A stretch of 64,000 nucleotides of DNA from Pseudomonas aeruginosa PAO1 (GCF_000006765.1 NC_002516.2); one strand, 5' to 3'. Positions 10,764 to 52,211 are shown, counted from the stretch's first letter. Program-made: numbers and translations. The notes: generated by a model from the letters alone, not told the origin.

Positions 10764-10796
10764 GAAAGCGTCCGAACGGGATAGCGGGAGAGAAGT

Positions 10797-10810
10797 GGTT
10801 GATATCAACC
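10797..10810. promoter_or_regulatory. Perfect 14-bp palindrome GGTTGATATCAACC upstream of mucR
   Basis: Read directly; 34 nt upstream of the mucR ATG in an AT-richer intergenic stretch. Confidence 0.4.
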
Positions 10811-11115
10811 TGATATTATTGCACGAGTCGCTTTCGCCAATGCCATCGGGCAGGACCAACGGTCGCCGGCGCAGGCGGAATCTTGCTCAACGGCCGGGCC
10901 TTTTGTACAGCGCTTTGTCTGCCGCCGGTCGCCGCCCGCCGGGGCAGGCGGCGGAAAGCTCGGCAGCGCTGGCAGGTTGACGCTACCCTGAAAGAAGCCA
11001 TGGTCGTCCGATCTTCCTCTGGCTTGATCAAAAAACTCTCATGGTCGCCGACGATGGCTTCAGCTGAATGGGGAATCGGTGAACTTTCTGAATGTCTCGA
11101 CAGGAGGTGCGTCTC

Positions 11116-11457
11116 ATGGAAAAGCCCTTCTCGGATGATGTCAGCGTGAATGTCCTGCGTCGCATGAAAGAAGGCGGCTTCGACTTCGCGCGCATCCATC
11201 CCATCGACTTCTTCGCCATCTTTCCCAGTGAGCGGGAGGCCCGCCAGGCAGCGGGCCAGTTTCGCGGCGAATCCCTCAGGGCCCAAGTCGTCGCTCGCGA
11301 CGATGGCTCCTGGAACCTGCAGGTCAGCAAGGTGATGTATGCCACCCATGCCGCCATCGGTGCCTTCGAACACGACCTGGAGGAAGTCGTGGTGCCGCTG
11401 GGCGGCGTGCTGGACGGGTGGGGCGTGACCCAGGAGGTCACTTCGCTGCGTCCGTGA
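11116..11457 (+). CDS. RraB-like (RNase E inhibitor fold) small protein, 113 aa
   Basis: SD CAGGAGGT before ATG 11116; acidic alpha/beta protein ending GGVLDGWG, like the RraB family. Confidence 0.75.
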   Translation: MEKPFSDDVSVNVLRRMKEGGFDFARIHPIDFFAIFPSEREARQAAGQFRGESLRAQVVARDDGSWNLQVSKVMYATHAAIGAFEHDLEEVVVPLGGVLDGWGVTQEVTSLRP

Positions 11458-11554
11458 CGGCGGCGGGACCCCGGCCGCGATCCCGGGCCGGGGCTCCTGC
11501 GTCGGGCTTTCCTTCCTCGAAGGCTTTCCTTCAGACTGGGGAAGGAGGTAAGCC

Positions 11555-12252
11555 ATGAGCGATATTCTGATCCTGACCCATGCCGAGTTCTGTCCGCCAG
11601 GCCATCTGGGTGCCGTGCTGGCGGAGCGCGGCCTGGACTTCCGCGTGATCCGCGCCGACCTCGGCGAACTCGCCGGTCTCGACGCCGAACGCCCGCGAGC
11701 GGTGGCGATCATGGGTGGGCCGATGAGCGTCAACGACGACCTGCCCTGGTTGCGCGACGAACTGGCGCTGCTGCGTCGCTTCATCGAGCGGCGCATCCCG
11801 CTGATCGGCCATTGCCTCGGCGGCCAGTTGCTGGCCCGCGCCCTGGGCGCGACGGTGCGGCACCAGCCCTACACCGAAATGGGCTGGCAGCCCATGCAGC
11901 GGGAAAGCCGCGACAGTCCATGGCTGGCCGGGCTGCCGGAGCGCTTCTCGATCTTCCAGTGGCACGGCGATGCCTTCGACCTGCCGCAGGGCGCCGAGCG
12001 CCTGCTGTCCAGTCCGTGGTGCGAGAACCAGGGGTTTTCCTGGGGTGGTCACGTACTCGGCCTGCAAGGCCATCCGGAAATGACCGAGGAACTGGTGCGG
12101 CGCTGGATCGCCGGCTGGCCGCACCTGCTCGATCCCTCCCAGCCCAGCCAGCAATCCGCGAGGACATGCTGGCCGGGTTGCCTGCCAGGATTGCCGGGCT
12201 GAATCGGGTGGCCGAGGGTTTCTACCGTCATTGGCTGTCGCTGATCAATTGA
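11555..12252 (+). pseudogene. Class I glutamine amidotransferase with an apparent 1-bp deletion near 12156
   Basis: Triad motifs GHCLGGQ and QGHPE are intact; frame 1 ends abnormally at 12202, while the plausible tail REDMLAGLPARIAGLNRVAEGFYRHWLSLIN continues in another frame to 12252. Confidence 0.7.
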
Positions 12253-37261: not shown

Positions 37262-37290
37262 AAAGAGCCCGCGGAACGCGGGCTCTTTTC
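37262..37290. terminator. Terminator AAAGAGCCCGCG-GAA-CGCGGGCTCTTTT
   Basis: Stem between the convergent thrH and pabB. Confidence 0.8.
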
Positions 37291-38651
37291 TATTCCGGGG
37301 ACGCTGTCCCGGCCATTCCTTCCAGGGTTTCCAGCAGCACCCGGACCTTGTCCAGGGTTTCCTGGTACTCGTCCTCCCAGTGCGAGTCGGCGACGATGCC
37401 GCCGCCGCCCCAGCAACTGACCTGGCCGTCCCTGACCAGCAGGGTGCGGATGGCGATCGAGCTGTCCATCTCGCCGCGCACGTCGAGGTAGAACAGGCTG
37501 CCGCAGTAGATGCCGCGTCGGCTCGGTTCCAGCTCGTCGATGATCTGCATGGCGCGAATCTTCGGCGCGCCGGTGATCGAGCCGCCGGGGAAGCTGCCTT
37601 CCAGCAGGTCGAGGGCGTCCTTGCCCGGCGCCAGTTCGCCGGTGACGCTGCTCACCAGGTGATGCACGTTGGGATAGCTTTCCAGGGCAAACAGCTCCGG
37701 TACCCGTACGCTGCCAGGTTGGCAACTGCGTCCGATGTCGTTGCGCAGCAGGTCGACGATCATCAGGTTTTCCGCGCGGTCCTTGGGGCTGGCCAGCAGC
37801 GACGCCGCCAGCGCCATGTCCTCCTCGGGGGTCTTGCCGCGCGGGCGGGTGCCCTTGATCGGCCGGGTTTCCACCTTGCCCTTGCCGAGCTTGAGGAAGC
37901 GCTCCGGCGACAGGCTGAGGATCGCGCCGTCGGCCAGTCGCAGGTAGCCGGAGAACGGCGTCGGGCAGGCCTCGCGCAGGGCGCGATAGGCCGGCCACGG
38001 CGAGCCGCTGCAAGCGGCCTGGAAGCGCTGGCTATAGTTCACCTGGTAGCAGTCGCCTGCCTGGATGTAGTCCTGGATGCGGCGGATCGCCTGCCGATAG
38101 TCGGATGCGCTGATGCTCCGTCGGAATTTTCCCAGAAGCTTGAAGTTGCCGGCCGTGCCTTGCGCTTCCTCGCTGAACAGGGCGATCAGGCGCTGGCGTT
38201 CGCGCTCGTCCAATCGCGGGTGGAATACCAGTTGGCTGGTGCCGGCCTGGTGGTCGCTGATCAGCGCCCAGGCATACAGGCCGACGGAGGCCAGCGGCAG
38301 GCCCAGGTCATCGCGGGCGTGTTCGCCGATGCGCTCGATGCGCCGACCCAGGTCGTAGGATAAATAGCCCAGCAGACCGCCGGCGAAGGGCAGTTCGTAC
38401 GGCGCTGGCAGCTGCGCGGGGCCCAGGCTTCCGGCCGCTTCGCGTAGGCGGGCGAAGAAGCGGTTGGCCGATTCGTCGGGCAGCGGCGCCAGTTCTGCCA
38501 ATGGCCAGGCGCTCATAAGGTCATAGCGTCCACGGGTAGCGATGGGGCGACCCGAATCGAGCATCACCGCACCGGGCGCCTCATGGATGATGGCAAAGAG
38601 ACAGCTTGGGTCGCTATGGTAGGGCAGGGGGTGAACATGACAACTGGGCAT
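37290..38651 (-). CDS. pabB: Aminodeoxychorismate synthase component I
   Basis: GDCYQVN, SPERF, PIKGT, ENLMIVDLLRND, FPGGSITGAPK. Confidence 0.93.
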   Translation of the reverse strand: MPSCHVHPLPYHSDPSCLFAIIHEAPGAVMLDSGRPIATRGRYDLMSAWPLAELAPLPDESANRFFARLREAAGSLGPAQLPAPYELPFAGGLLGYLSYDLGRRIERIGEHARDDLGLPLASVGLYAWALISDHQAGTSQLVFHPRLDERERQRLIALFSEEAQGTAGNFKLLGKFRRSISASDYRQAIRRIQDYIQAGDCYQVNYSQRFQAACSGSPWPAYRALREACPTPFSGYLRLADGAILSLSPERFLKLGKGKVETRPIKGTRPRGKTPEEDMALAASLLASPKDRAENLMIVDLLRNDIGRSCQPGSVRVPELFALESYPNVHHLVSSVTGELAPGKDALDLLEGSFPGGSITGAPKIRAMQIIDELEPSRRGIYCGSLFYLDVRGEMDSSIAIRTLLVRDGQVSCWGGGGIVADSHWEDEYQETLDKVRVLLETLEGMAGTASPE

Positions 38652-38752: not shown

Positions 38753-41521
38753 ATGGAAATATCCCACGGAGATTTGGCTCCGTACCACAATGATAATGAC
38801 ACAGGGATACAGGCCGTGGATGCAGTACAGGATCCAGCAGCCGGCAGCCTTTCGCGCTCCAGAATAGTGCCGCCTCAGGTGCCAGCCGAATATTCTCTTC
38901 GCCCCGCGATCCGCAACCTGCTGGATCGCAATCCCCATTCACGCGTTCTGATGTTTTCCGCACCTGCCGGCTTCGGCAAGACCTGCGCGCTCGCCGCCCT
39001 GGCCAGGGAGCGCACTGTAGCAGACCAGGCGGTGGCCTGGCTGTCGCTGGCCGAAGAAGACGACGACCCCGCCCGTTTCTGCCGGCAGCTCATCGAGGCG
39101 CTGGGCGAAGCCGTGCCGCAGCTTGGCGACGACGCCCAGACCTACCTGCAGAACACCATGCGGGTCCCGGTGGTGGCGGTGATCGAAAGCCTGCTCGGCG
39201 ATCTCGATCGCTATGCGCGGCCGTTGCTGCTGGTGCTGGACGACCTGCACCTGGTTAGCAACCCGGACATCTTCACCGGCCTCAACCGCCTGGTGCAGTA
39301 CGCACCGCCCGGGCTGGTCCTGGCCCTGGGCACGCGTTCGCAGCCGGCGCTGAGCCTGGCTACCTGGCGGGCCAAGGGACTGTTGCTGGAAATCGGCCTC
39401 GAGGAGCTGCGCCTCGGCTTCGAGGAAACCCGCGAATACCTCGAGCGCAGCGGTCTCTATCTGGACGAGCCCTGCCTGAAGGCGCTCTATGGCCAGACCG
39501 AAGGCTGGGTGGTGGGCGTGCATCTCGTCAGCCTGTGGCTGCGCCAGCAACCGCAGGTGCAGGAAATGGCCCTGCTCGACGGCGACAAGCAGGCGGTCAG
39601 CGCCTATCTGCTGGCGGCGGTCTTCGAACGCTTGCCTGGCGACCTGCAGGAAGCGCTGCTGGCCCTTGGCGTTGCCAGCCAATTGAGCGGCGACCTGGCC
39701 AACGCCCTGACCGGGCGCCAGGACGGCCAGGCGCTGCTGGAGCGCCTGGAGTCCATGCAATTGTTCCTCCTGCCGCTGGATCGCGAACGCCAGTGGTATC
39801 GCTTCCACCTGCTGTTCGCCGACTTCCTCCGCAACCGCCTGCGCGACTCCGATCCGGACCGTTTCAAGCAACTGCATTTCAACGCCAGCCTGTGGTTCAC
39901 CAACCACCACATGCCGACGTTCGCCATCGAGCATGCCTGTGCGGCGGAAGACCCGGAGATGATCGCCGCGCTGGTCGACGGATGCGGACTGGAGCTGATC
40001 AACCGCGGCCAGCTCAGCCTGATCTACCGTTGGCGCAAGCATGTGCCGGACGAAATCGCCGAGCGCTATCCGATCCTGGTCCTTACCGATGTCTGGTCGC
40101 GGGCCAGCGACCTCAGCCTGGGCGAGGCCAACCGGATCATCGACGAACTGCTGGCGCGCTGGGGGGAGAGCCGCGGCGACGGGCCGATGGGCGACCAGTA
40201 CCTCTCCGCGCTGGCGGTGAAGGCGGTGGTGGCGTTGCAGAAGGACGATCTGGAACTGTGCATCGCCCTGGCTCGCCGGGTCGAAGTCCAGCTCGGGCAG
40301 AACGCTGCCTTCCTCGAAGTGGCGGTGTTGATCACTGCCGCGCTGGCCCAGGTGGTCCGTGGCCAGGGCGACCAGGCGCGGCGCCTGCTGGGGCTGGCGC
40401 AGCAGCGCAATCATTTCCTCGAAGGGCGCTACCTGGACATGCAACTGGCCAACGTCGAGGTGATCCTCGCACTCGAGCAGGGCCAGGTGAAGCAGGCGCA
40501 ACTGCTCATCGAGCGGCTCCGCCAGCGTGCCCGGCCGCTGTTCGAGAAGTCCAGGAGCGCGCTGGCGCTGCCGACCATCACCGAGGCCCTGACCGCCTAC
40601 TACAGGATCGAGCTGGACGGGCTGGAAGAGCGCCTGGGCTGGGCGCTCGGGCATGTGGATGTGATCAATCCGATCGATTTCTATGCCCAGGGGCAGATCT
40701 GCCTGGCGCGCACCCAGCGCCTGCTGGGACGGCCGAAGGAGGCGCTGGCCAGCCTGGCGGCGATGCAGGCCCTGGCCTCGCGCAATCAGTCGTGGCGCTT
40801 CTTCGCCCAGGCCATGGCCGAAGAGATCAACCTGATCCTCCAGGACAGCGGCCCCGACCGCCTGAAGCGCGCCGAGCAGCGGTTGAAGAGCGTGGACTGG
40901 AACAAGATGGCGGCACACTACCGCAACATGGCCTTCAACCCGGTCAACTGGTCGCTGGGTGTGAGCCGCGTGCGCCTGTTGCAGGGGCGAGGACATTTCA
41001 GCGAGGCGCTGCACGAGATCACTCAGTTGCGCGGCACCTTGCAGCCCGGTTGGCATGGCCTGCAGCGCCTGCGCCTGGATATCCTGGCGGCGCTCAGCTA
41101 TCAGCGCCTGGGCTACCAGGAACGGGCCAACAGCCTGCTCGGCGAATGCCTGATCAATGCCGAACGGGAAGGGGTGCGCAGCCTCTTCATCGAGGAAGGC
41201 GACGGCATTCGCCAGTTGCTCCAGCAACTCGAATCCACCGAGCGCCAGCCGGCGCTACAGACCTTCATTCGCGGCCTGCTCGGCATCTGGCCCGGGCAGG
41301 GCGTGCGCAAGCCCCAGGATGCGCTCGAGGAAGGCCTGACGGAGCGCGAGCGCGAAGTGGTCTGCCTGGCCGCACAGGGCCTATCCAACGAAGAAATCGG
41401 CCAGCGCCTGTCGCTGGCCCTGGGGACCGTCAAATGGCATCTGCACAACATCTACGAAAAGCTCAAGGTGCGCAATCGCACCCAGGCGATCCGGCGAGCC
41501 CGCGAGCTGAGCCTGCTCTGA
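38753..41521 (+). CDS. MalT-type STAND ATPase-TPR-LuxR regulator (copy 1)
   Basis: Walker A APAGFGKT, Walker B LLLVLDDLH, QWYRFHLLF, C-terminal LTERE...VKWHLHNIYEKL HTH. Confidence 0.9.
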   Translation: MEISHGDLAPYHNDNDTGIQAVDAVQDPAAGSLSRSRIVPPQVPAEYSLRPAIRNLLDRNPHSRVLMFSAPAGFGKTCALAALARERTVADQAVAWLSLAEEDDDPARFCRQLIEALGEAVPQLGDDAQTYLQNTMRVPVVAVIESLLGDLDRYARPLLLVLDDLHLVSNPDIFTGLNRLVQYAPPGLVLALGTRSQPALSLATWRAKGLLLEIGLEELRLGFEETREYLERSGLYLDEPCLKALYGQTEGWVVGVHLVSLWLRQQPQVQEMALLDGDKQAVSAYLLAAVFERLPGDLQEALLALGVASQLSGDLANALTGRQDGQALLERLESMQLFLLPLDRERQWYRFHLLFADFLRNRLRDSDPDRFKQLHFNASLWFTNHHMPTFAIEHACAAEDPEMIAALVDGCGLELINRGQLSLIYRWRKHVPDEIAERYPILVLTDVWSRASDLSLGEANRIIDELLARWGESRGDGPMGDQYLSALAVKAVVALQKDDLELCIALARRVEVQLGQNAAFLEVAVLITAALAQVVRGQGDQARRLLGLAQQRNHFLEGRYLDMQLANVEVILALEQGQVKQAQLLIERLRQRARPLFEKSRSALALPTITEALTAYYRIELDGLEERLGWALGHVDVINPIDFYAQGQICLARTQRLLGRPKEALASLAAMQALASRNQSWRFFAQAMAEEINLILQDSGPDRLKRAEQRLKSVDWNKMAAHYRNMAFNPVNWSLGVSRVRLLQGRGHFSEALHEITQLRGTLQPGWHGLQRLRLDILAALSYQRLGYQERANSLLGECLINAEREGVRSLFIEEGDGIRQLLQQLESTERQPALQTFIRGLLGIWPGQGVRKPQDALEEGLTEREREVVCLAAQGLSNEEIGQRLSLALGTVKWHLHNIYEKLKVRNRTQAIRRARELSLL

Positions 41522-41523
41522 CC

Positions 41524-44247
41524 ATGGGCCATCGCGACGGTGTTCCCGCCAGCACCATTCCGCTGTTGCAGACCAAGCTGTTCCCGCCAGGCGCCGGAGG
41601 GCTGCCGCTGCTGCCCCGCCAGGCGCTGATCGACCGCCTGTACGAGGCCCGCGGGCGACGCGCGATGGTGCTCAGCGCGCCGGCCGGCTTCGGCAAGAGC
41701 ACCATCCTCTGCCAGTTGCGCCTGCGCCTGCTGGAGCAGGGCGCGGCGGTGGCATGGTTGTCCTGCGACGAGACCGACAGCGAACCGCAGCGTCTGATCC
41801 AGTACCTGCTGGCGAGCATCCAGCGAGTGGTCCCGGCATTCGGCGGCAATACCGCCAATCTGCTCGGCACCGACGTCGCGGTGCCGCTGGAGGGTATCCT
41901 GGATGCCTTCCTCGCCGACCTGCGTCGCCTGGAAGGCCCCTTGTACCTGTTCCTCGACGATTTCCACCGCATCCGCCACGCCGCCTTGCCGCATGGGGTT
42001 CGCTACCTGATCGAGAACCTGCCCGATCACGTGCGGGTGGTGGCCTCGACCCGCTTCCGCCCGCGCTTCCTGGTCGACGAGCCGACCCTCAAGCCCTGGA
42101 CCTTCTGCCTGAGCGCGGAAGACCTGCGGCTATCGCGCGAGGAGAGCGATGCGTTTCTCCTCGACCTCAAGGGGCTGGAGCTGGGCGAGCGCGAGCTGAA
42201 GCTGCTGTTCAAGCGCACCGAAGGCTGGATCACGGCGTTGCACCTGGCGGCCCTGGCCCTCAGTCGCAATACCGACCGGGAAGGTTTCCTCCTCGGGCTC
42301 TCCGGGACCGAACGGAACATCGCCGACTACCTGGCGGAAGACGTGCTGGCCAGCCTGCCCGCCGACCTGCAGCTGTTCCTCGACCAGACCTCGGTGCTCG
42401 ATGAGTTCAATGCGGAACTGTGCAATGCGCTGACCGGGCGTCGCGACGGCCTGGACATGCTCATGCGCCTGCAGAACGAGCAGTTGTTCGTCATCGCCCT
42501 GGACGACCAGCGCGAATGGTTCCGCTACCACCATCTGTTCGCCGAGTTCCTCCAGGGGCGGCTGTCCCGGCATGCCGATCCGACCCCGTTGCTGCATGCG
42601 GCGGCGCGCTGGTGCGAGGGGCGCGACCTGGCCGACCGGGCGATCAAGTACGCCCTTCGCGCCCGCGACTACCTGTTCGCCGCCGAGTTGCTGGAGCGCC
42701 AGGGCGCGCGCCTGATCGCCGGTAACCGGGTGTACGGCATCCTCGGCATGCTCAACGGCATTCCCGCCGAGGTGATCCGCGAGCATCCAGTGTTCCAGAT
42801 CTTCTACGCCTGGCAACTGGCGTTCGAGCAACGCTTCGCCGAGGCCGAGGCGTTGATCGAGGAGGTCAGCCACCGCCTCTTGCAGGGGCGCGGCAAGGTC
42901 ATGCACTTCGGGCTCGGCGAGTTGCTCGCCGCCGCCCAGGTGCTCAAGGCCCTGGTGTTGCTCTACCAGGACAAGCTCGAAGCCTGCCTGAAGGTCGCCC
43001 GTCACTGGCTGTCCATGGTCCCGAGCAACCAGCCGGTGTTCCGCGCCAGCCTGCTCTGCGTGCAGGCTTCGGCGCATGCGCTGCTCGGCGACTACGCCGA
43101 GGCCGCCGGCGCCATCGGTTCCGCGCGGGAGGACCTGAAAGTCGCCGACAGCGAGTACCTGCAGGTGGTGACCAGCCTGATCGAATCCCTGATCTGCAAG
43201 GAGAGTGGCGACCTGGAGCGGGGCAGGGCGATCGCCGAGTCGGCGCGCAACCGGGTCGAGCAGGTATTCGGCCGGCGCAGCCGGGTCGGCGGACCCTTGT
43301 CGCTGGCCTATGCCGACCTGCTCTACGAGCAGGACCGGCATGCCGGCGTGCTCGCCGAACTACCGCTGGCGACGGTCTGGCGGGATGTCGCGACGCCGGT
43401 GGAACTGCTCAGTCGCGGCCAGTTGGTCATGGCCAAGGCGCGCTTCTTCTCCGGCGCCGCCGAGCAGGGGCTGGCGCAACTCGACGAATGGCTGAGCGGT
43501 CTGCTCTCGCCCGGCTACGAGCGTGTCTATGCTCACGCCATGAGCTGCAAGGTGCAGTTCCTGCTGTGGCTGCGCCGTCCGAACGAAGCCGAACGGGTCT
43601 GCCTGCAACTGGAGCGGCATCTTGCCGGGCTCTCCGGCGAGCGGCATGCCGACGCACAGACCGCCCTGGTCCTGGCGGAGGCTCGGCTGGCATTGTCCGA
43701 GCGTCACGCGGAACGCGCGCAGAGCAAGCTGGAAAGCTGTCTGGCCGGCTACTCTTCCGCTTACCAGAGGGATCGGCGGCTGCGTTTGTCCTTGTTACTT
43801 TCTGTGGCGTATTGGCAGAAAGGTAACAGCGAAAAAGCCATCGGCCTGTTCCTCGCCACGCTCGAGGAAGCCTGGAATCTCGGCTACCGCCGGCTGTTCC
43901 AGGACGACGCGTTGTGGCTGTTGCCGATGTGGGAAAGCTGGAGGGAAGCGGAGCCCAAGCGTGCCGCGGCCTGGCAGGGGCTGGCCGACCTGCTCCGCGA
44001 GCAGTGCCGGAAGCTCTCCGTGGACCCGGAAAGTTTCGATGAAAATCAGGATGTTAGCCATCGCGAACGGGAAATCCTGCGGCTGGTGGCGGCGGGCTTG
44101 TCGAACCGCGATATCGCGCAGGCGGTGCACCTGTCGGAAGCCACCATCAAGTGGCACCTGCACAACCTGTTCGCCAAGCTGGGTGTGAAGAGCAGAACGC
44201 AAGCCGTACTAAAGGGTAAAAGCCTGGGACTGCTGAGCGAGGCGTGA
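41524..44247 (+). CDS. MalT-type STAND ATPase-TPR-LuxR regulator (copy 2), 907 aa
   Basis: ATG 2 nt after the stop of copy 1; APAGFGKS, LFLDDFH, WFRYHHLF, IKWHLHNLFAKL. Confidence 0.9.
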   Translation: MGHRDGVPASTIPLLQTKLFPPGAGGLPLLPRQALIDRLYEARGRRAMVLSAPAGFGKSTILCQLRLRLLEQGAAVAWLSCDETDSEPQRLIQYLLASIQRVVPAFGGNTANLLGTDVAVPLEGILDAFLADLRRLEGPLYLFLDDFHRIRHAALPHGVRYLIENLPDHVRVVASTRFRPRFLVDEPTLKPWTFCLSAEDLRLSREESDAFLLDLKGLELGERELKLLFKRTEGWITALHLAALALSRNTDREGFLLGLSGTERNIADYLAEDVLASLPADLQLFLDQTSVLDEFNAELCNALTGRRDGLDMLMRLQNEQLFVIALDDQREWFRYHHLFAEFLQGRLSRHADPTPLLHAAARWCEGRDLADRAIKYALRARDYLFAAELLERQGARLIAGNRVYGILGMLNGIPAEVIREHPVFQIFYAWQLAFEQRFAEAEALIEEVSHRLLQGRGKVMHFGLGELLAAAQVLKALVLLYQDKLEACLKVARHWLSMVPSNQPVFRASLLCVQASAHALLGDYAEAAGAIGSAREDLKVADSEYLQVVTSLIESLICKESGDLERGRAIAESARNRVEQVFGRRSRVGGPLSLAYADLLYEQDRHAGVLAELPLATVWRDVATPVELLSRGQLVMAKARFFSGAAEQGLAQLDEWLSGLLSPGYERVYAHAMSCKVQFLLWLRRPNEAERVCLQLERHLAGLSGERHADAQTALVLAEARLALSERHAERAQSKLESCLAGYSSAYQRDRRLRLSLLLSVAYWQKGNSEKAIGLFLATLEEAWNLGYRRLFQDDALWLLPMWESWREAEPKRAAAWQGLADLLREQCRKLSVDPESFDENQDVSHREREILRLVAAGLSNRDIAQAVHLSEATIKWHLHNLFAKLGVKSRTQAVLKGKSLGLLSEA

Positions 44248-44478
44248 GCGGCAGCCGCCATCGCTCCATCCCTTGGATGGGCTGGCGGCGGAAGGGGTGG
44301 CCCAGTAGCTTGGAATCCAGGACGAGAGAGCATGAGGCTCTACCGAATCCATGTCCGGGACACCTAGGGAAGCAGTACCGGACCTGGAGACCGGCGAGAT
44401 GCCGGTCGATCTGCCGGGGACAGGATGCAAACGGCAGTGCCCTGGGGCAAACCACACCTGAACACTGGAGAAATAACA

Positions 44479-44916
44479 ATGAAAAAGCACCTGTTCCTTG
44501 CAACTGCTGTTCTGGCTGCTCCCTTGCTGGCGCATGCCGACCTGAAAGCCATGGACGATGGCGCGCTGTCCGACGTGACCGGCCAGGCAGGCATCAGCAT
44601 TTCCGGTACTTTCCAGGGCTCCGTCGGGGCCGTGACCTACACCGATACCGACACCAACGGCGGCTCCCTGCGGCTGGAGAACATCAGCCTGCCGGCGCTG
44701 ACCATCGACGATACCAAGCCGCTGACCATCGACGTCGTCACCACCGATATCGGCGGCAAGTCGACCCAGCAACTGGCCATCGGCCTGCCGGCCATCACCG
44801 GCGACGTGACCGTTGGCGCCATCAAGGTGGGCGACACCAGCGCCGCCAGCATCGGCTCGCTGACCGTCTCCGGGCTGAACATGGCCGGTTCCACCATCAA
44901 GGTCTGGGGTCACTGA
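44479..44916 (+). CDS. Secreted beta-rich DUF6160/FilA-like protein, 145 aa
   Basis: SD TGGAG; signal peptide (AHA); AMDDGALSDVTGQAG motif; G/S/T/I/V-rich; ends KVWGH. Confidence 0.75.
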   Translation: MKKHLFLATAVLAAPLLAHADLKAMDDGALSDVTGQAGISISGTFQGSVGAVTYTDTDTNGGSLRLENISLPALTIDDTKPLTIDVVTTDIGGKSTQQLAIGLPAITGDVTVGAIKVGDTSAASIGSLTVSGLNMAGSTIKVWGH

Positions 44917-44994
44917 TCCAGGAACCGAGTCGAGACGCGAAGACCTCGCCGAGGCATCGGCGGGGTCTTTCTCCGAAAGAGGTACGACGGGGCG

Positions 44995-45756
44995 ATGTTC
45001 GAGATTTTGCTGGGAAGTCTGATCGGACTGTTCGGGTTCACCCAGACGGTCGATACCAAGCCGCAACCGCAGGGCACGGTCAACCTCAGCCAGCCTCTGA
45101 CCCCCAATGGACCCTACCGCGAATCGGTGCAACTGGAGCCGATGAGCCAGTTGCAGTTCCGCAACGTCATCCGCCAGGCCTATGACTACAGCTGCGGCTC
45201 GGCGGCGCTTACCACGCTGCTGGACTACTACCTCGGGCGCAACCTCGAGGAACGCCAGGTCATGGAAGGGCTGCTGCGCTATGGCGAGGCCGATAAGATC
45301 GTGCAGCGCCGCGGTTTCTCGCTGCTCGACATGAAGCGCTACGCCGCTGCGCTGGGCTACAAGAGCGGTGGTTTTCGCGCCGAGTTCAGCGACCTGGACG
45401 CTCTCGAGCATCCGGCGCTGGTCCCCATCCACTATGCCGGCTTCAAGCATTTCGTGGTGGTGCGCGATGTCTACAACGATCACGTCTTCGTCGCCGATCC
45501 GGCCTTGGGCAACATCAGCTTCACCCGGACGCGCTTCGAGGAAATCTGGGACCAGAACGTCCTGTTCGTGATCTTCCCGAGTGGGCAGGAGCCCCGCAAC
45601 GCGCTGGCGCTGAACGATCGCGACATGCGCCTGGTGGACGACCGCACCGTCAGCCTGCTGGCGTTCCGCGAGTTTCCGCAGATCAACAAGATCACTGAAA
45701 ACCAGGTCCGTGAGCTGGGCACTGGTGGCGACGTCATACACCTGCGCACCAAGTAG
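44995..45756 (+). CDS. Stand-alone C39 peptidase (FapD/FilB-like)
   Basis: RQAYDYSCGSAAL (Cys), GFSLLDMKRY, FKHFVVV (His), VADPALG (Asp); no ABC domain. Confidence 0.88.
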   Translation: MFEILLGSLIGLFGFTQTVDTKPQPQGTVNLSQPLTPNGPYRESVQLEPMSQLQFRNVIRQAYDYSCGSAALTTLLDYYLGRNLEERQVMEGLLRYGEADKIVQRRGFSLLDMKRYAAALGYKSGGFRAEFSDLDALEHPALVPIHYAGFKHFVVVRDVYNDHVFVADPALGNISFTRTRFEEIWDQNVLFVIFPSGQEPRNALALNDRDMRLVDDRTVSLLAFREFPQINKITENQVRELGTGGDVIHLRTK

Positions 45757-45796
45757 CAGATACCCAAAAACAAGAACAATCTCTGGGGATAGCGCC

Positions 45797-46822
45797 ATGA
45801 GAATCAGGGGGTACACATGCGCGGCGGCGCTGATGCTGTCTATCAGCGGTTTGTCCGTTGCCGAGGAAGCCTCGGTCGACCAGGCCCGTGACGCGCTGGC
45901 CAAGAAGAATGACGATGCCGACAGCGCCAAGGCGCTGGAGGAGGTCTTCCAGGCCGCCGAGAAGAGCTACACCTTGCTCAAGAAGGGCGAGCGGACCCTG
46001 ACCTACGGTTTCGACTACGCGCTGGTGCGCGACCAGCGGCTGACCCTGGTGCCGCTGACCAAGACCAGTGGCGGCACGCAGATCTACGGCCTCGCCGGCC
46101 GGCAGAGCCAGTCCCAGCACACCTTCACCAACTCCTTCACCTTCGACTACGGGATCTGGGACAACCTCACCTTCAGTTTCCGCCTGCCGCTGGTAGCCAA
46201 GTACGACACCGAGATGGATACCCACGCCTACAGCCTCGGCGACGTTTCCGCGACCTTGCGCTGGCAGCCCTGGGCGGCGGTGCGCGGGCGGCCGGTCACC
46301 ACGCTGTATACCACCATCGGCCTGCCGACCGGCGACAGTCCCTACAAGACCAACCTGGACAAGGACATCTCCACCGGCAACGGCTACTACAGCCTGGGCT
46401 TCGGCGCGAACATGTCCTATGTGATCGACCCGGTGGTCCTCTACGGCTCGCTCGGCTACACCTGGAACCTGCCGGTGGACGACGTGCACCAGACCCTGGC
46501 CGACAACTCCCAGCTGGAGAAGGTCTCGCCCGGCAACACGATCAACTTCAACATGGGCATGGCCTACGCGCTGTCCTACGACGTCTCGCTGGCGACTTCG
46601 TACCAGATGGCCTACACGCTGAAGAACCGCTACCACACCACTGCCGGTACGTTCGAGTCGTCCGAACAGACCAGTAGCATCATGAACTTCTCGCTCGGCT
46701 TGCGGACGTCACCGGACTACATCGTCAACGTCAACGCCGGTTTCGGCCTCACGGAAGACTCGCCGGATGTACTGCTGGGGTTATCCGTACCCCTCGATAT
46801 CAAAGGGCTGAAGGCCCAGTAA
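45797..46822 (+). CDS. FapF-like outer-membrane beta-barrel, 341 aa
   Basis: Signal peptide, helical N-region, GDVSATLRWQP, LPTGDSPY, TGNGYYS, DPVVLYGSLGYTWN, GFGLTEDSPD. Confidence 0.75.
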   Translation: MRIRGYTCAAALMLSISGLSVAEEASVDQARDALAKKNDDADSAKALEEVFQAAEKSYTLLKKGERTLTYGFDYALVRDQRLTLVPLTKTSGGTQIYGLAGRQSQSQHTFTNSFTFDYGIWDNLTFSFRLPLVAKYDTEMDTHAYSLGDVSATLRWQPWAAVRGRPVTTLYTTIGLPTGDSPYKTNLDKDISTGNGYYSLGFGANMSYVIDPVVLYGSLGYTWNLPVDDVHQTLADNSQLEKVSPGNTINFNMGMAYALSYDVSLATSYQMAYTLKNRYHTTAGTFESSEQTSSIMNFSLGLRTSPDYIVNVNAGFGLTEDSPDVLLGLSVPLDIKGLKAQ

Positions 46823-46841
46823 CCCGCGAGCGAGGCCTGTT

Positions 46842-48440
46842 ATGAAGATGCGCATTGCGCCGCTCTGGCTGGCGCTGGCAGGGGTGTGCCTGGCCTGGAT
46901 TCCGCCGGCCGGCGCGCAGATGGCCAACGACCTGACCATCGGCAACCCGAAAGCCATGGCCCTCGGCAACGCCGTGACCGCCGACGAGACCGGCATCGAT
47001 TCGGTGCACTACAACCCGGCGGCGCTGACCAGGATGAAGGGCCGCCAGGCGACCGTGAAGCTGCTCACCGGGGTGATGGACATCCGCGCCGGCTTCAAGG
47101 CGCCGCCGAACTACGGCGAAGGCACCTTCGGCCTGCGCGACGACCCGGTTGCCAACAGCCACAGCCGGACCCTGACCCCGACCATGTACCTGCCCGGTCT
47201 CGGCGGCATGACCGACGTGCCGTTGCTGGTGGCGCCGCTGGCCGGGATCTCGATCAACCCGCCGGGCTCCAAGTTCACCTTCGCCACCAACGTCTACACC
47301 CCGCAAGCGCTGGGCTACAGCCGCGATTCCGATAGCGATCCGGCGCGCTACCAGGGACGCGAGGTGTCGTTGCAGCGGCTCACCTACTTCTCGCCGACCC
47401 TGGCCTACCAGGTCAACGACGAGCTGTCGGTCGGCCTGTCGGTGGGTTTCTCCCACCAGGCAGTAGCGTTGAACGAGGATTTCCGGGCGCCGAACCAGTT
47501 GCTCGGGCTGTTGCAGCAGACCAAGGAGATCGGTTGCCTGCCGGGAATGCAGGAGATCCTCGAGGTGTTCTTCAACGTCTGCGGCGGCAATATCGGTCCG
47601 TTCCAGAACCTGGCCAATATCGATCTGGACATGCAACAGTCGCTTTCGCCCAGCTTCAACCTCGGCGTGCTCTGGGAGCCCACCGACTGGTTCGCCTGGG
47701 GCGCGACCTACCAGAGCGAGTCGCGGATGAGGCTCAAGGGCAAGTACCGGGTCGACTACGGCCAGGGCTGGCAGGGTTTCTGGACCGGGGTGCACAAGTC
47801 GCTCGGCGGTGCGATCCTCGGCCAGATGTTCCCCTACGGGAACGTCGACGAAGAGCATGGCAACGCCACGATGAACATGGTCTATCCGGATGCCTTCTCC
47901 ACCGGCGTGAAGCTGCGCCCGTTCAAGAAGTGGCAATTCAACTTCGACCTGAAATGGAACGGCTACAGCGACTGGAACGAGTTCAAGATCGAGTTCGACC
48001 GCGAGCTCGACCTGCTGCGCATCGCCAAGTACCTCGACTCGAAGGACGCCACCAGCCACAGCATCACCCTCGACCGCGGCTACCGCGATACCTGGAGCTG
48101 GGCCATGGGCGTGCAGTACGACGTCAACGACCGTTTGCAGCTGCGCGCCGGCTACGAATACCGGCCTTCGGCGATCCCCAAGGGCCAGGCGGACATCCTG
48201 GTGCCGATCGGCGATGCCAATCTCTACGGCCTGGGGCTGGGCTACCAGTGGGACAAGGACACGGTGATCGATGTCGGTTTCAACTACTTCGTCACCAAGC
48301 AGAGCGTCAAGGCCGATAACAGCTGCAACCTGAACTGCACCGGGCTCGACAACCTGGTGTACAACCCCTACGCGGGACTGGACGTGGACACCACGGTGAA
48401 GGCCTATATTTTCGCCATGACCTACCGTACGACCTTCTGA
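46842..48440 (+). CDS. FadL/OmpP1/TodX-type outer-membrane channel, 532 aa
   Basis: AMALGNAVTA...HYNPAAL hatch, alternating beta-strands, C-terminal Phe (YRTTF). Confidence 0.82.
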   Translation: MKMRIAPLWLALAGVCLAWIPPAGAQMANDLTIGNPKAMALGNAVTADETGIDSVHYNPAALTRMKGRQATVKLLTGVMDIRAGFKAPPNYGEGTFGLRDDPVANSHSRTLTPTMYLPGLGGMTDVPLLVAPLAGISINPPGSKFTFATNVYTPQALGYSRDSDSDPARYQGREVSLQRLTYFSPTLAYQVNDELSVGLSVGFSHQAVALNEDFRAPNQLLGLLQQTKEIGCLPGMQEILEVFFNVCGGNIGPFQNLANIDLDMQQSLSPSFNLGVLWEPTDWFAWGATYQSESRMRLKGKYRVDYGQGWQGFWTGVHKSLGGAILGQMFPYGNVDEEHGNATMNMVYPDAFSTGVKLRPFKKWQFNFDLKWNGYSDWNEFKIEFDRELDLLRIAKYLDSKDATSHSITLDRGYRDTWSWAMGVQYDVNDRLQLRAGYEYRPSAIPKGQADILVPIGDANLYGLGLGYQWDKDTVIDVGFNYFVTKQSVKADNSCNLNCTGLDNLVYNPYAGLDVDTTVKAYIFAMTYRTTF

Positions 48441-48450
48441 GGGCTGGAGC

Positions 48451-49641
48451 ATGATGCGCGCATCCATCGTACTTTGCGTCTTCTCCCTGGCGCTGCCGGC
48501 ATCTTCGCCGGGCTGGGCCTCCGGCGGGCGCTACCTGACTTGGGTGGACGACAATGGCGGGGTGCACAACACCTTCGTCGACGGCCAGTTCGACCGCCAG
48601 CAGCGCCAGGCGCGGCAGCGCATCGGCCAGAGCGACCAGGCGCGGGTGCTGAACAAGGCGGACAACGCCACGCAGTGGCCGGGGAACAGCAGCGGAGGGG
48701 AGAGCAAGCGTCGCTACTACACCTGGATCGATGCCAACGGCAACGTGCAGAACAGCTTCTATGCCGGCGCCCAGGTCGCCGGCCAGCGCGCCGACTACGT
48801 CCTGCCCAACGGCGAGCACTCCGCCGAATACATCGATGCCGAGGCCTTCGAGGGCAAGGGTTTCGTTCGCAGCGAGAACGGCAGTCCCTACTACACCTGG
48901 GTGGACGAGAAGGGCCGCATGCACAACTCGCAGATCCCGCCCGAGGAGCGCGCGGCGCGCTTCAAGCGGGAGGCCGCACCTTCGTCGCAGATCGCCTTCA
49001 CCGAGGGCCGGCAGATCGAGTTCAAGCAGCGTCCGGCGGCGTTGCCCGGCCTGGATGGCGCCGGCCAGCAGAGCGATGCGCTGAAGGCTTTGCTCAAGGG
49101 CACCGAGATGACCATCGACGATCTCTACCAGGACCTGCAACGGCGCTGCTGCGAGCAGATCGCCGAGAGCGACTTCACCGAACTGGATGCCGACGAACCG
49201 CGCTACGAGGAGTTGAACCGCTTCTCGCCGAGCTTCGACTTTCCCATGGGCAGGAGCTTCTACGCGGCGATCCGGCTGCCGCGCTCCCAGGGTGTCTACG
49301 GCCTGCGCATCCGCAGTTTCGCCAACCGCCAGGTGGTCTACCCGTCGCTGCTGTTCCTCGACGAGCACAAGCGGCCGACCCGGCTGGTCAGCGACGCGGT
49401 GTACAAGCTGAACCCGGAAACCTGGTATCGCTACGCTTTCATCGAGGGTACGGTGCCGGTGCGAGCCAATCGCGGCGAGCGCTACGTGCTGCTGCTGACC
49501 ACCGACGAGGACCGCTCGCTGCAAACCCTCGACAACAAGCCGTTCAAGCGTCCGCTGCAGGACCTGGCGGTGAACGAGGCGGGTATGCAGGTGCATGAGC
49601 ACGCCCGGCAGGGCGGCTTCGAGCTGGCCGTGGTGCGTTGA
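48451..49641 (+). CDS. Exported protein with three YxTW[VI]DxxG repeats and a MalM/FilE-like C-domain
   Basis: Signal peptide; repeats at 48529, 48712 and 48886; C-terminal YGLRIRSF...VYPSLLFLDE. Confidence 0.65.
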   Translation: MMRASIVLCVFSLALPASSPGWASGGRYLTWVDDNGGVHNTFVDGQFDRQQRQARQRIGQSDQARVLNKADNATQWPGNSSGGESKRRYYTWIDANGNVQNSFYAGAQVAGQRADYVLPNGEHSAEYIDAEAFEGKGFVRSENGSPYYTWVDEKGRMHNSQIPPEERAARFKREAAPSSQIAFTEGRQIEFKQRPAALPGLDGAGQQSDALKALLKGTEMTIDDLYQDLQRRCCEQIAESDFTELDADEPRYEELNRFSPSFDFPMGRSFYAAIRLPRSQGVYGLRIRSFANRQVVYPSLLFLDEHKRPTRLVSDAVYKLNPETWYRYAFIEGTVPVRANRGERYVLLLTTDEDRSLQTLDNKPFKRPLQDLAVNEAGMQVHEHARQGGFELAVVR

Positions 49642-49652
49642 AATCCGAGACA

Positions 49653-49684
49653 TGAAAAAGCCCGGCCGGAGCCGGGCTTCTTCA
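49653..49684. terminator. Bidirectional terminator AAAAAGCCCGGC-CGGA-GCCGGGCTTCTT
   Basis: Stem between convergent operons. Confidence 0.85.
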
Positions 49685-49697
49685 TACCGGAAGCACG

Positions 49698-50681
49698 TCA
49701 GCCCTGGTGCTGCTGGACGTGGCCGAACAGCTGCTGGGAGAAGCGTACGCGCTCTTCCGCGGACTCTTCGATGCCTTTCGCCTTGAGTTCTTCCAGTCGC
49801 GCCTCGACGGCGTGGCAGCGGTGCACCAGGCCGCTGTCGTTGGCGATCTGGATGTTCAGGCCCGGGCGGGCGTTGAGTTCGAGGATCAGCGGGCCTTTCT
49901 CCTGGTCGAGAACCATGTCCACGCCGATGTAGCCGAGGCCCGACAACTCGTAGCAACCGGCCGCCAGCTTCATGAAGCCGTCCCAGTTCGGCAGTTGCAC
50001 GCCGTCCACCGCGTTGGTGGTGTCCGGGTGCTTGGCGATCTTGTTGTTCAGCCAGGTGCCGCGCAGGGTGACACCGGTGGCCAGGTCGACGCCCACGCCG
50101 ATGGCGCCCTGGTGCAGGTTGGCCTTGCCGCCCGACTGCCGGGTCGGCAGGCGCAGCATGGCCATCACCGGGTAGCCCATCAGTACGATGATGCGGATGT
50201 CCGGCACACCTTCGTAGCTGATGCTCTTGAAGATCTGGTCGGGGGTCACCCGGTACTCGATCAGTACGCGGTCGCGATGGCCGCCGAGGGAGTAGAGGCC
50301 GGAGAGGATGCTCGAGATGTGGTGCTCGATCTCCTCGTGGCTGACGATCTTCCCCGACACGGTCTTGTAGCGGCCCTCGAAGCGGTCGGCGATCACCATG
50401 ATGCCGTCGCCGCCGGCGCCCTGCGCCGGCTTGATGACGAAATCGTTGTGCTCGCCGATGATCTCGTTGAGCTTGTCGATGCCTTTCTCGGTCTCGATGA
50501 TGCCGTACATCTCCGGCACGTGGATGCCGGCCTCGAGCGCGCGTTCCTTGGTGATGATCTTGTCGTCCACCACCGGATACAGGTGCCGCTTGTTGTACTT
50601 CAGGACGTAATCGGCATTGCGTCGGTTGATGCCCATCACGCCTTTCGCGGTCAGGTCTTTCCAGGTCTTCCAGATCGACAT
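49698..50681 (-). CDS. RimK-related alpha-L-glutamate ligase-like ATP-grasp protein
   Basis: VIKPAQGAGGDGI, KANLHQG, GYIGVD, LELNARPG. Confidence 0.85.
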   Translation of the reverse strand: MSIWKTWKDLTAKGVMGINRRNADYVLKYNKRHLYPVVDDKIITKERALEAGIHVPEMYGIIETEKGIDKLNEIIGEHNDFVIKPAQGAGGDGIMVIADRFEGRYKTVSGKIVSHEEIEHHISSILSGLYSLGGHRDRVLIEYRVTPDQIFKSISYEGVPDIRIIVLMGYPVMAMLRLPTRQSGGKANLHQGAIGVGVDLATGVTLRGTWLNNKIAKHPDTTNAVDGVQLPNWDGFMKLAAGCYELSGLGYIGVDMVLDQEKGPLILELNARPGLNIQIANDSGLVHRCHAVEARLEELKAKGIEESAEERVRFSQQLFGHVQQHQG

Positions 50682-50684
50682 GGT

Positions 50685-52211
50685 TCAGTCCTTGAGCAGG
50701 GCCTTGAAGCGGAACAGCTCGGTCAGGCGGTAGCCGCGGTAGCGGCCCATGGCGAGCATGAAGGCGACCAGGATCAGCAGCACGGCCGGGAAGGTGAAGA
50801 TGAAGTACACCAGTTCCGGGATGCGCATGAGGATGTGCGCCAGCGATGCCGCGAACAGGGTGCCGATGGCCACCTTCATCGCATGGCCGCCGCCGCGCTC
50901 TTCCCAGGTGATCGACAGGCGTTCGATGGTCATGGTCAGGATCACCATCGGGAACAGGGCGATCGACAGGCCGCTCTCGAAGCCGAGCTTGTGGCTGAAC
51001 AGGCTGATCACCGCGATCATCACCACCACGAAGGTCAGCACCACCGAGAGGCGCGGCAGCATCTGCAGCTTCAGGTGCTCGAGATAGGAGCGCAGCGACA
51101 GGCCCAGGGCGGTGATCACGGTGAACAGGGCGATACCCCATTGCAGGCCGGTCTCGCGGAAGGCCAGGGCGATCAGAACCGGGGTGAAGGTGCCAAGGGT
51201 CTGCAGGCCGATCAGGTTGCGCAGGATCAGGATCACCAGCACGCCGATCGGGATCATGATCATGATCTGGAAGGTCTGCTGGGTGGACAGCGGCAGGCCG
51301 TACAGGGAGTACTCGAGGAAGGCCGCCTCGGTGTTCTCGTCGGACAGCTTGGCCAGGCGGATGGCGTTCATCTCGCTGCTGTTCAGGCTGAAGCTGACCT
51401 GGGCCTTCTTGCCGCCGTCGATGGTCATCAGCGGCTCATCGCCAAGCCACCAGATCAGGCGATCGGAGGGCAGGCCCTGTTCGCCGGTGACCACGTTGAA
51501 ATACAGCCAGTTCTCGCCGTTGAAGCTGCGCAGCCACAGTTCCGGGCTCTGTTGCAGGTCGGCGACCAGGCGGATGGTATGGACCCGCTCCATCGGCACG
51601 TGGGCGATGGACAGCAGGGTTTCGACGATATGCGCTTTCTTTTCCAGGCTGGTGTCGCCGGCCATCAGCAGCTTGACGTTGTCGTCGTTGCCGTTGTTGG
51701 CGCGCTTGATGGCTTCGCTGACGAAGGTCTCGACGTCGGCCGAGTGCTGGCGAATGGGGGCCAGCAGGGCTTCTGCGGCGATCTTCTCCGGGCCTTCCAG
51801 GGGCAGGCTGTCGCGGAAGATCGGGCCTTTCTCCTTGGTCTTCTCGCCGGTGTAGCGCTTGGTCAGCACCAGGCGGTAATACAGGGTCTGCTTGCCGTTG
51901 GCGCGGCGGGCGGACCAGGTCACCTTGCGATTGCCGTCGGCGCGATTGATGCTGACGCCGTAATTGTTGGAGACGAAGCTTTCGTTGAGGCTGACGTAGT
52001 CCTGGCTCAACGGCGGAACGAACATCTGCACCTTGACCGGGGTTTTCGGCGTGGCGACGAAGTCGACCTTGGCATCGATGTTCCAGAGGTCATCGGTTTC
52101 GGCTTCGGTAACGGGAATACCCTGGACGAAAATCTGATAGGCGGTGATCGCCACACCCAGGGTCAGCAGGATGGCGATCAGGACTTTCAGATGCAGGTTG
52201 AGAGAGCGCAT
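50685..52211 (-). CDS. Inactive transglutaminase fused to a 7TM domain
   Basis: N-terminal TM, periplasmic domain, seven C-terminal TM segments (GTFTPVLIALAF, LFPMVILTMTIER). Confidence 0.82.
   Translation of the reverse strand: MRSLNLHLKVLIAILLTLGVAITAYQIFVQGIPVTEAETDDLWNIDAKVDFVATPKTPVKVQMFVPPLSQDYVSLNESFVSNNYGVSINRADGNRKVTWSARRANGKQTLYYRLVLTKRYTGEKTKEKGPIFRDSLPLEGPEKIAAEALLAPIRQHSADVETFVSEAIKRANNGNDDNVKLLMAGDTSLEKKAHIVETLLSIAHVPMERVHTIRLVADLQQSPELWLRSFNGENWLYFNVVTGEQGLPSDRLIWWLGDEPLMTIDGGKKAQVSFSLNSSEMNAIRLAKLSDENTEAAFLEYSLYGLPLSTQQTFQIMIMIPIGVLVILILRNLIGLQTLGTFTPVLIALAFRETGLQWGIALFTVITALGLSLRSYLEHLKLQMLPRLSVVLTFVVVMIAVISLFSHKLGFESGLSIALFPMVILTMTIERLSITWEERGGGHAMKVAIGTLFAASLAHILMRIPELVYFIFTFPAVLLILVAFMLAMGRYRGYRLTELFRFKALLKD

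Follow-up and report, generated by a model that had tools for sequence, protein, structure and literature searches.

PA1761-PA1765 of Pseudomonas aeruginosa PAO1, a probable minimal Fil-type pilus system with a secretion core shared with Fap

The DNA analysed here, referred to as the window, is a stretch of 64,000 nucleotides (nt) of the Pseudomonas aeruginosa PAO1 genome (GCF_000006765.1, NC_002516.2), read on one strand from 5' to 3'. In the reading of its open reading frames (ORFs), five co-oriented ORFs on the + strand span positions 44479-49641, separated by intergenic gaps of 78, 40, 19 and 10 nt, respectively. PA1762 has been listed as a 'Peptidase C39 domain-containing protein' of 29 kDa detected in the extracellular proteome (PMC10613653), and PA1764 appears among FadL homologues (PMC6137939). 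Because these two reports fix the locus tags of the second and fourth genes, the operon corresponds to PA1761-PA1765. We conclude below that it probably encodes the P. aeruginosa version of a Fil-type pilus system, in which a secretion core shared with the Fap system serves a filament of folded subunits. The five genes are as follows:

PA1761: 44479-44916, + strand, 145 amino acids (aa), putative FilA/DUF6160-type pilus subunit precursor
PA1762: 44995-45756, + strand, 253 aa, stand-alone C39 cysteine peptidase of the FilB/FapD type
PA1763: 45797-46822, + strand, 341 aa, outer-membrane barrel of the FilC/FapF type
PA1764: 46842-48440, + strand, 532 aa, FadL/TodX-family outer-membrane barrel of the FilD type
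PA1765: 48451-49641, + strand, 396 aa, exported DUF4124-like/MalM protein in the FilE position

The initial annotation of this region had described five co-oriented genes, all with export signals, ending at one terminator. The gene layout was recovered as described, with a strong bidirectional hairpin behind PA1765. The export signals were borne out for PA1761, PA1763, PA1764 and PA1765, whose Sec signal peptides are of the classical kind (basic N-terminus, hydrophobic core, AxA-like site), but PA1762 is atypical. Its N-terminal hydrophobic segment, MFEILLGSLIGLFGF, is devoid of basic residues and is therefore better termed a signal-anchor or atypical signal.

PA1762 matches Pfam Peptidase_C39 (expectation value, E, 1e-20) and two NCBIfam models, FilB (E 1e-87, 294 bits) and FapD (E 7e-35, 120 bits). 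Since the latter score lies under the FapD cut-off of 330, PA1762 is a relative rather than an equivalog of FapD. The catalytic residues Q61 (oxyanion), C67, H152 and D168 are present, and all four are invariant in 10 homologues, in keeping with the stand-alone C39 peptidase resembling FapD that had been proposed. The C39 domains of bacteriocin ATP-binding cassette (ABC) transporters have the same catalytic Gln, Cys, His and Asp; however, PA1762 stands alone, without an ABC fusion, and its proposed site of action is outside the cytoplasm. FapD itself is a C39 protease of the periplasm, and Fap secretion requires its active-site Cys; the 2017 paper on FapF left its substrate open (Rouse et al., PMC5557850). 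The tail of PA1762, at residues ~201-229 (45595-45680), harbors a conserved motif, L-x-L-xxx-D-M-R-h-h-D-D-x-T-h-S-x-x-A-F, which is faintly like the subunit leader described below (h-DD-xx-h-S) and, from its sequence, could represent a pseudo-substrate or a docking motif common to both.

PA1763 matches NCBIfam FilC (E 2e-85, 287 bits) as well as FapF (E 1e-18, 67 bits). The resemblance of this barrel to FapF, suggested earlier, is found both in sequence, where its C-terminal half matches FapF crystal structures in the PDB (phmmer, E 1e-13), and in the modelled structure. The AlphaFold2 (AF2) model, built from an alignment without the Acinetobacter row (predicted local distance difference test, pLDDT, 74.8), contains helices at residues 25-58, which would be periplasmic, followed by a barrel. 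A Foldseek search with this model returned FapF proteins for all of the top 18 matches (E 1e-19 to 4e-17), with template-modelling (TM) scores of 0.75-0.86 on the target and root-mean-square deviations of 2.2-3.9 Å; the first match outside FapF was a COG4313 channel. FapF is the Fap secretion pore (Rouse et al. 2017, PMC5557850).

PA1764, initially described as a FadL-like channel, matches Pfam Toluene_X/FadL over the full length of the profile (E 2e-131, profile positions 2-421) and NCBIfam FilD (E 2e-154), and shows a weak match to PorV_fam (E 3e-8). FadL homologues of this protein are present in the PDB; PA1764 is about 100 aa longer than FadL, and its N-terminal hatch retains the NPA motif. 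Proteins with the FadL fold also serve protein secretion, as exemplified by PorV of type IX secretion. A FadL-type gene is a constant partner of Fil-type clusters in very different bacteria, and this constancy fits a role in pilus biogenesis at least as well as one in uptake. For PA1764, biogenesis or anchoring may thus be the function, instead of the uptake of nutrients, and the coupling to uptake of a hydrophobic substrate that the initial annotation raised is speculative. PA1765 matches Pfam DUF4124 plus MalM (E 3e-33). What the initial annotation called a repeat protein has three copies of a DUF4124-like motif, YxTWxDxxGxxxN, and then a MalM domain at its C-terminus, as well as a conserved Cys-Cys pair. 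A search of the PDB returned no relative of PA1765.

The putative subunit PA1761 matches Pfam DUF6160 (E 7e-23, 81 bits against a cut-off of 27), while the NCBIfam FilA model covers only its C-terminus (51 bits against a cut-off of 220). A subunit profile search of 1.84 billion representative proteins (E <= 0.001) placed PA1761 in a DUF6160/FilA-type family of 730 representative clusters. Since the lengths of its members start at 145 aa and extend to about 520 aa, PA1761 is among the shortest. Its signal peptide comprises residues 1-20 (44479-44538) and would end at AHA; it is followed by a propeptide of 16 residues at positions 21-36, DLKAMDDGALSDVTGQ (44539-44586), and by a predicted mature protein of 109 residues (37-145; 44587-44913) that ends in WGH. 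A signal peptide and then a fixed leader motif were found in 138 of the 146 full-length family members listed. Counted from the conserved Gln, the leader residues occur in these 138 members at the following frequencies:

Position -15: L/M, 96%
Position -12: M/L/I/V, 98%
Position -10: D, 93%
Position -7: L/M, 99%
Position -3: T/S, 93%
Position -2: G, 97%
Position -1: Q, 98%
Position +2: G, 99%

At the other end of the protein, a C-terminal His is present in 112 of the 138 leader-bearing members, typically within Y/W-G/A-H. Both the leader and the C-terminus of PA1761 agree with this family pattern. Minor subunit-like genes of other clusters encode the same leader and end in G-Q, G-R, G-K, G-G or G-A; no leader-motif gene apart from PA1761 was found in the 64-kb window. 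One family member of 2064 aa, P0300, combines the usual leader and a WGH-type end with ten FilA-like stretches between them, and may be either a 'pre-polymerised' subunit that arose by concatenation or an artefact of gene calling.

Hydrophobic residues at -4, -7, -12 and -15 together with Gly at -2 are the signature of double-glycine leaders cut by C39 peptidases, whose cleavage specificity is Gly-Gly or Gly-Ala. The leaders of the PA1761 family share these hydrophobic positions and the Gly at -2. They differ in having Gln (98%) instead of Gly, Ala or Ser at P1, and in being placed after a Sec signal peptide. The AF2 model of PA1761 contains a short helix at residues 27-34 followed by eight strands, and neither the sequence nor the model contains FapC-type imperfect Q/N-rich repeats. 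The initial description of a small, beta-rich subunit without FapC-type long repeats thus fits this protein of 145 aa.

The only significant match of PA1761 in the PDB by sequence is 9XFV (phmmer, E 1.7e-7), and the same entry is the only Foldseek match of its AF2 model at E <= 0.001 (E 3e-4, probability 1.0). 9XFV is a helical filament termed 'pilus-like-alpha', solved by cryo-electron microscopy (cryo-EM) from cave drip water, with a rise of 11.7 Å and a twist of 283.9°; its sequence was inferred from the map, and the alpha-helical segments of its chain of 173 residues were used to fix the hand of the map (PNAS 2026, PMC12956863). P0358, a close precursor of the 9XFV protein, shows that residue 1 of the chain is the Asp directly after …LSTVSGQ and that the chain reaches the terminal His. 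Because the chain starts right after this Gln, the built subunit lacks the signal peptide and a 15-residue propeptide, and the absence of the leader residues agrees with cleavage after Gly-Gln. The gene for P0358 adjoins three weaker DUF6160 genes and a gene for a FilB-type peptidase that is 50% identical to PA1762. The cluster of P0345, a relative of P0358, encodes a MalT-type regulator (30% identical to that of the window), a C39 peptidase (52% to PA1762), a FilC-type barrel (38% to PA1763) and a FadL-type protein (36% to PA1764). In sequence as well as in fold, PA1761 and 9XFV thus fall into one subunit family; they share the leader and the C-terminal His, and have relatives encoded with FilB-, FilC-, FilD- and MalT-type genes. 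They differ in that the mature subunit of 9XFV has 173 aa against a predicted 109 aa, the clusters of its relatives contain three further subunit-like genes, and the identity to PA1761 is about 28-31%.

Synteny was surveyed in 51 genome loci and judged wherever the sequence covers the genes. By this measure PA1761-PA1765 are syntenic in Pseudomonas and its relatives and in Endozoicomonadaceae, the loci of the latter containing two or three subunit genes. The core of DUF6160, C39, barrel and FadL genes recurs in distant metagenomic clusters, including a third one (L062). The five ORFs are all intact, and their counterparts in P. paraeruginosa (L001) are 96-100% identical. The exact protein sequences of the operon occur on at least 1000 contigs, and for four of the five proteins the exact matches in public records are named P. 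aeruginosa. A match on a Vibrio plasmid (H7) was dropped because the barrel gene stands by itself there: the plasmid's gene table, which is incomplete, shows neither a peptidase nor a subunit gene next to it.

In Acinetobacter sp. Tol 5, FilA is called the subunit of the Fil pilus (PMC11784438), and cryo-EM has shown purified 'curved, thin FilA pili' from A. genomosp. 16 (PMC11539960). The literature search found no paper on the assembly of FilA pili, none that joins FilA, FilB, FilC and Acinetobacter, and no functional work on DUF6160; its hits for FilF were vaccine papers. The fil cluster of A. baumannii VB31459 (L052, CP035931.1), a sequence labelled as a plasmid but with chromosomal genes, served as reference. 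Collinear tblastn matches showed identities of 52% between PA1762 and FilB, 41% between PA1763 and FilC, and 39% between PA1764 and FilD. In this reference, filB contains an in-frame stop (6820-7533) and filE is split by stops (10560-11818), owing to either strain decay or an assembly error. The two systems have the gene order A-B-C-D in common, and the FilA leader (…MDDAALSAATGQ|DG…) and its C-terminal …SGH end agree with those of PA1761. PA1761, however, has 145 aa against about 280 aa for FilA and shares with it only the leader and the last ~37 residues; by sequence, no solved relative of A. baumannii FilA was found. Moreover, where FilE has FilE_C, PA1765 bears a MalM domain, along with three DUF4124-like motifs. 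In Pfam it matches MalM and not FilE_C (PF22881), which the A. baumannii FilE fragment does match, and its direct comparison with Acinetobacter FilE_C is weak (BLASTP E 0.001; hhalign probability 61%, E 8e-5, 62 columns). The filABCDE order noted at the outset consequently stands for genes A to D, in order and homology, but the fifth gene is no clear FilE. No counterpart of the lipoprotein FilF, present in L052, was found in the window, where PA1765 is followed directly by a terminator and a convergent gene, and the two MalT-type regulators upstream are a further difference from Acinetobacter.

The pathway suggested by these homologies would run as follows. All five proteins would cross the inner membrane by Sec, seen here in the form of signal sequences. 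After cleavage by signal peptidase, the subunit would retain the 16-residue propeptide with its double-glycine-like hydrophobic spacing, and PA1762, in the periplasm and probably tethered to the membrane, would cut this propeptide behind Gly-Gln, after Gln36. The mature, beta-rich subunit of 109 residues would then exit through PA1763, by analogy with the role of FapF, and PA1761 would polymerise into a thin helical pilus like 9XFV and the Acinetobacter FilA pili. The constant partner PA1764 and the lineage-specific PA1765 are probably accessory factors for biogenesis or anchoring.

Several points weigh against this interpretation. Gln at P1 is outside the known specificity of C39 peptidases, and the 15 residues missing from 9XFV could be disordered rather than cleaved. 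The mature PA1761 is 64 residues shorter than the 9XFV chain; its model is of moderate quality (pLDDT 68), with TM scores to 9XFV of just 0.42-0.49. Every match to an NCBIfam Fil model falls under the curated cut-off, these being 'exception' models for Acinetobacter proteins. FilF is missing and FilE is not clear in the operon. The topology proposed for PA1762, which has no classical signal peptide, is read from its sequence, and the proposed secretion and polymerisation of PA1761 rest on homology.

Among the alternatives, the one that survives best, although we consider it unlikely, is a device for uptake or secretion of hydrophobic molecules, with the FadL-type channel as its core and PA1761 as a surface binding or carrier protein that forms no polymer. 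PA1764 is a full-length FadL-family protein with the hatch and NPA motif kept, barrels of the PA1763 type resemble the COG4313 channel for hydrophobic compounds, and MalM domains accompany a transport regulon. In addition, PA1761 and PA1762 are up in a mutant of rubredoxin reductase, an enzyme of the alkane pathway (PMC12431658). Nevertheless, no linked catabolic gene set is conserved with the module in the loci examined, a protease and subunits with a leader and conserved termini are typical of polymerising subunits, and relatives of PA1761 form pili.

Less probable still is a second Fap-like functional amyloid, which the initial annotation had considered and in which the subunit would be exported unfolded through the FapF-like barrel and form cross-beta fibrils outside. 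The operon does have two components in common with Fap, a C39 peptidase that stands alone and a FapF-fold barrel whose N-terminal part is helical and periplasmic; PA1762 and PA1763 are true homologues of FapD and FapF, and PA1761 is beta-rich. However, none of the five proteins matches the Fap subunit models of Pfam or NCBIfam; counterparts of FapA, FapB, FapC and FapE are absent, and so are the amyloid repeats. The operon further differs from Fap in its added FadL-type barrel and in a DUF6160 cargo with an obvious leader, whereas the substrate of FapD is still open. FilB and FilC also outscore FapD and FapF (294 against 120 bits and 287 against 67 bits, respectively). The amyloid reading is left without support because the only solved relative of PA1761, and the only solved structure of its family, is an ordered helical pilus of folded subunits with alpha-helical segments. 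A Fap-like cluster was observed in an alphaproteobacterium, on the Croceicoccus marinus plasmid pCME4A9I (L059, 3519-7783), with matches to FapD (E 1e-45) and FapF (E 1e-31). The protein in its FapE position bears a double-glycine-like motif, ALSEEVLARQRGG|I, a sequence feature which hints that FapD-type enzymes may also cut a leader on a cluster-encoded protein.

As the initial annotation had supposed, no functional study in P. aeruginosa came up in the literature search for PA1759-PA1765, which gave only expression or proteome tables. That the operon is a silent or decaying remnant without present function, as this near absence from the literature and its minimal form with a single, very short subunit might suggest, is most improbable, given the intact ORFs and their identity in P. 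paraeruginosa, the exact sequences on at least 1000 contigs, the catalytic residues kept in PA1762, the conserved leader RNA and internal hairpin with their compensatory changes, and the detection of the PA1762 protein (PMC10613653).

Apart from its coding sequences, the Fil-type operon of P. aeruginosa is accompanied by the following regulators and regulatory features:

38753-41521, + strand: MalT-type STAND/LuxR regulator, probably PA1759, 922 aa (Pfam AAA_22/AAA_16, TPR_MalT, GerE)
41524-44247, + strand: second MalT-type STAND/LuxR regulator, probably PA1760, 907 aa, a paralogue 30% identical to the first
44266-44280, strand not applicable: conserved palindrome CCATCCCTTGGATGG, candidate operator
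44302-44468, + strand: structured 5' leader (five hairpins, one closing helix)
44939-44970, + strand: terminator-like hairpin 3' of PA1761, a 14-bp stem and then UUUCU
49652-49685, both strands: bidirectional intrinsic terminator, common to the operon and the convergent ATP-grasp gene

In each of the Pseudomonas loci examined, tandem paralogous MalT-type regulators precede the operon, and a MalT-type regulator with 30% identity is also present in a metagenomic Fil-type cluster (L060). PA1759 has been reported as an Hfq/Crc-associated transcript (PMC5990048). The region of 230 nt upstream of PA1761 is unusually conserved. The palindrome CCATCCCTTGGATGG, situated between the second regulator gene and the leader, stays nearly invariant across an alignment of 9 upstream regions, although the proteins of the species concerned share only 55-75% identity; it may be an operator for the LuxR-type regulators. 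A promoter scan found no sigma-70-like site upstream of PA1761. A sigma-54 reading of a conserved TGGCA…TTGC stretch was rejected by eye, because its spacing does not fit and the TTGC is missing from the window.

Of the Shine-Dalgarno (SD) sequence GGAG, the first two G are paired in the closing helix of the 5' leader. RNAalifold predicted 49 pairs, 23 of them with compensatory changes; 91.4% of the leader cells are paired, compared with 30-45% when partners are slid, and the covariation was reached by none of 500 shuffles. Conserved GGA motifs lie at 44318-44323 (unpaired), at 44366-44370 and 44422-44426 (both in loops), and at 44467-44470 (the SD). GGA in loops and in the SD resembles the known arrangement of RsmA/CsrA targets, and the 5' leader may be such a target or a new riboregulator. 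Rfam holds no family for this leader or for the hairpin between PA1761 and PA1762.

That hairpin, with its UUUCU run, gives the operon an internal terminator-like site in addition to the final one. A GC-rich hairpin and a U-rich run occupy the same place in single-subunit (Pseudomonas-type) loci and in three Kistimonas loci (48 loci examined), the position being kept while the sequences differ among species. A partial terminator behind major pilin genes is common, and the hairpin probably acts as an attenuator or partial terminator, increasing the amount of subunit relative to machinery. The final terminator has a 9-bp GC stem (49658-49679) inside the extended hairpin, with a z-score of -4.9 for the + strand and of -6.4 for the - strand; none of 200 shuffles folds as well. 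Expression is probably set at three levels, by the two MalT-type regulators, the structured 5' leader and the partial terminator behind PA1761.

Upstream, the operon and the two regulators are preceded by a pabB-like gene (window 37290-38651). Downstream, a convergent pair on the - strand encodes an ATP-grasp protein (ATPgrasp_ST) and a seven-transmembrane (7TM) inactive transglutaminase (49698-52211), followed by ppsA. The ATP-grasp and 7TM genes adjoin the operon in many, but not all, related loci and, because this adjacency is not universal, they are probably unrelated to the pilus. As in the window, thrH-like and/or pabB-like genes lie beside Fil-type clusters of Endozoicomonadaceae and of one metagenomic contig, and the chromosomal position of the Fil-type cluster seems to be old and inherited vertically. 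These neighbours are located as follows:

thrH-/pabB-like neighbours: L043/L064, 685-3055; L045-L048; L054, 93-1568; window, 37290-38651

The locus is best regarded as a new, minimal representative of the Fil pili, a kind known by name and images and not by mechanism. More tentatively, and at somewhat less than even odds, Fil-type clusters may constitute a distinct and widespread pilus pathway, in which Sec export, removal of the double-glycine-like propeptide at Gly-Gln by a stand-alone C39 peptidase of the periplasm and transit across a FapF-type barrel that cooperates with a barrel of the FadL type yield a pilus of folded subunits; PA1761-PA1765 would be its minimal, core-genome form, held off by the MalT-type regulators and by a leader whose GGA loops might bind RsmA. 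The analysis joins the Acinetobacter Fil pili, the cave-water pilus solved by cryo-EM and the FapD/FapF core, a link absent from the papers found. It results in a concrete, testable processing site for a periplasmic C39 peptidase and, if true, the logic of leader and C39 peptidase also points to the substrate of FapD. Surface fibres are central to work on attachment and biofilms of P. aeruginosa, for which type IV pili, Cup fimbriae, Tad pili and the Fap amyloid are known; PA1761-PA1765 would add a further, unstudied class of fibre from the core genome.

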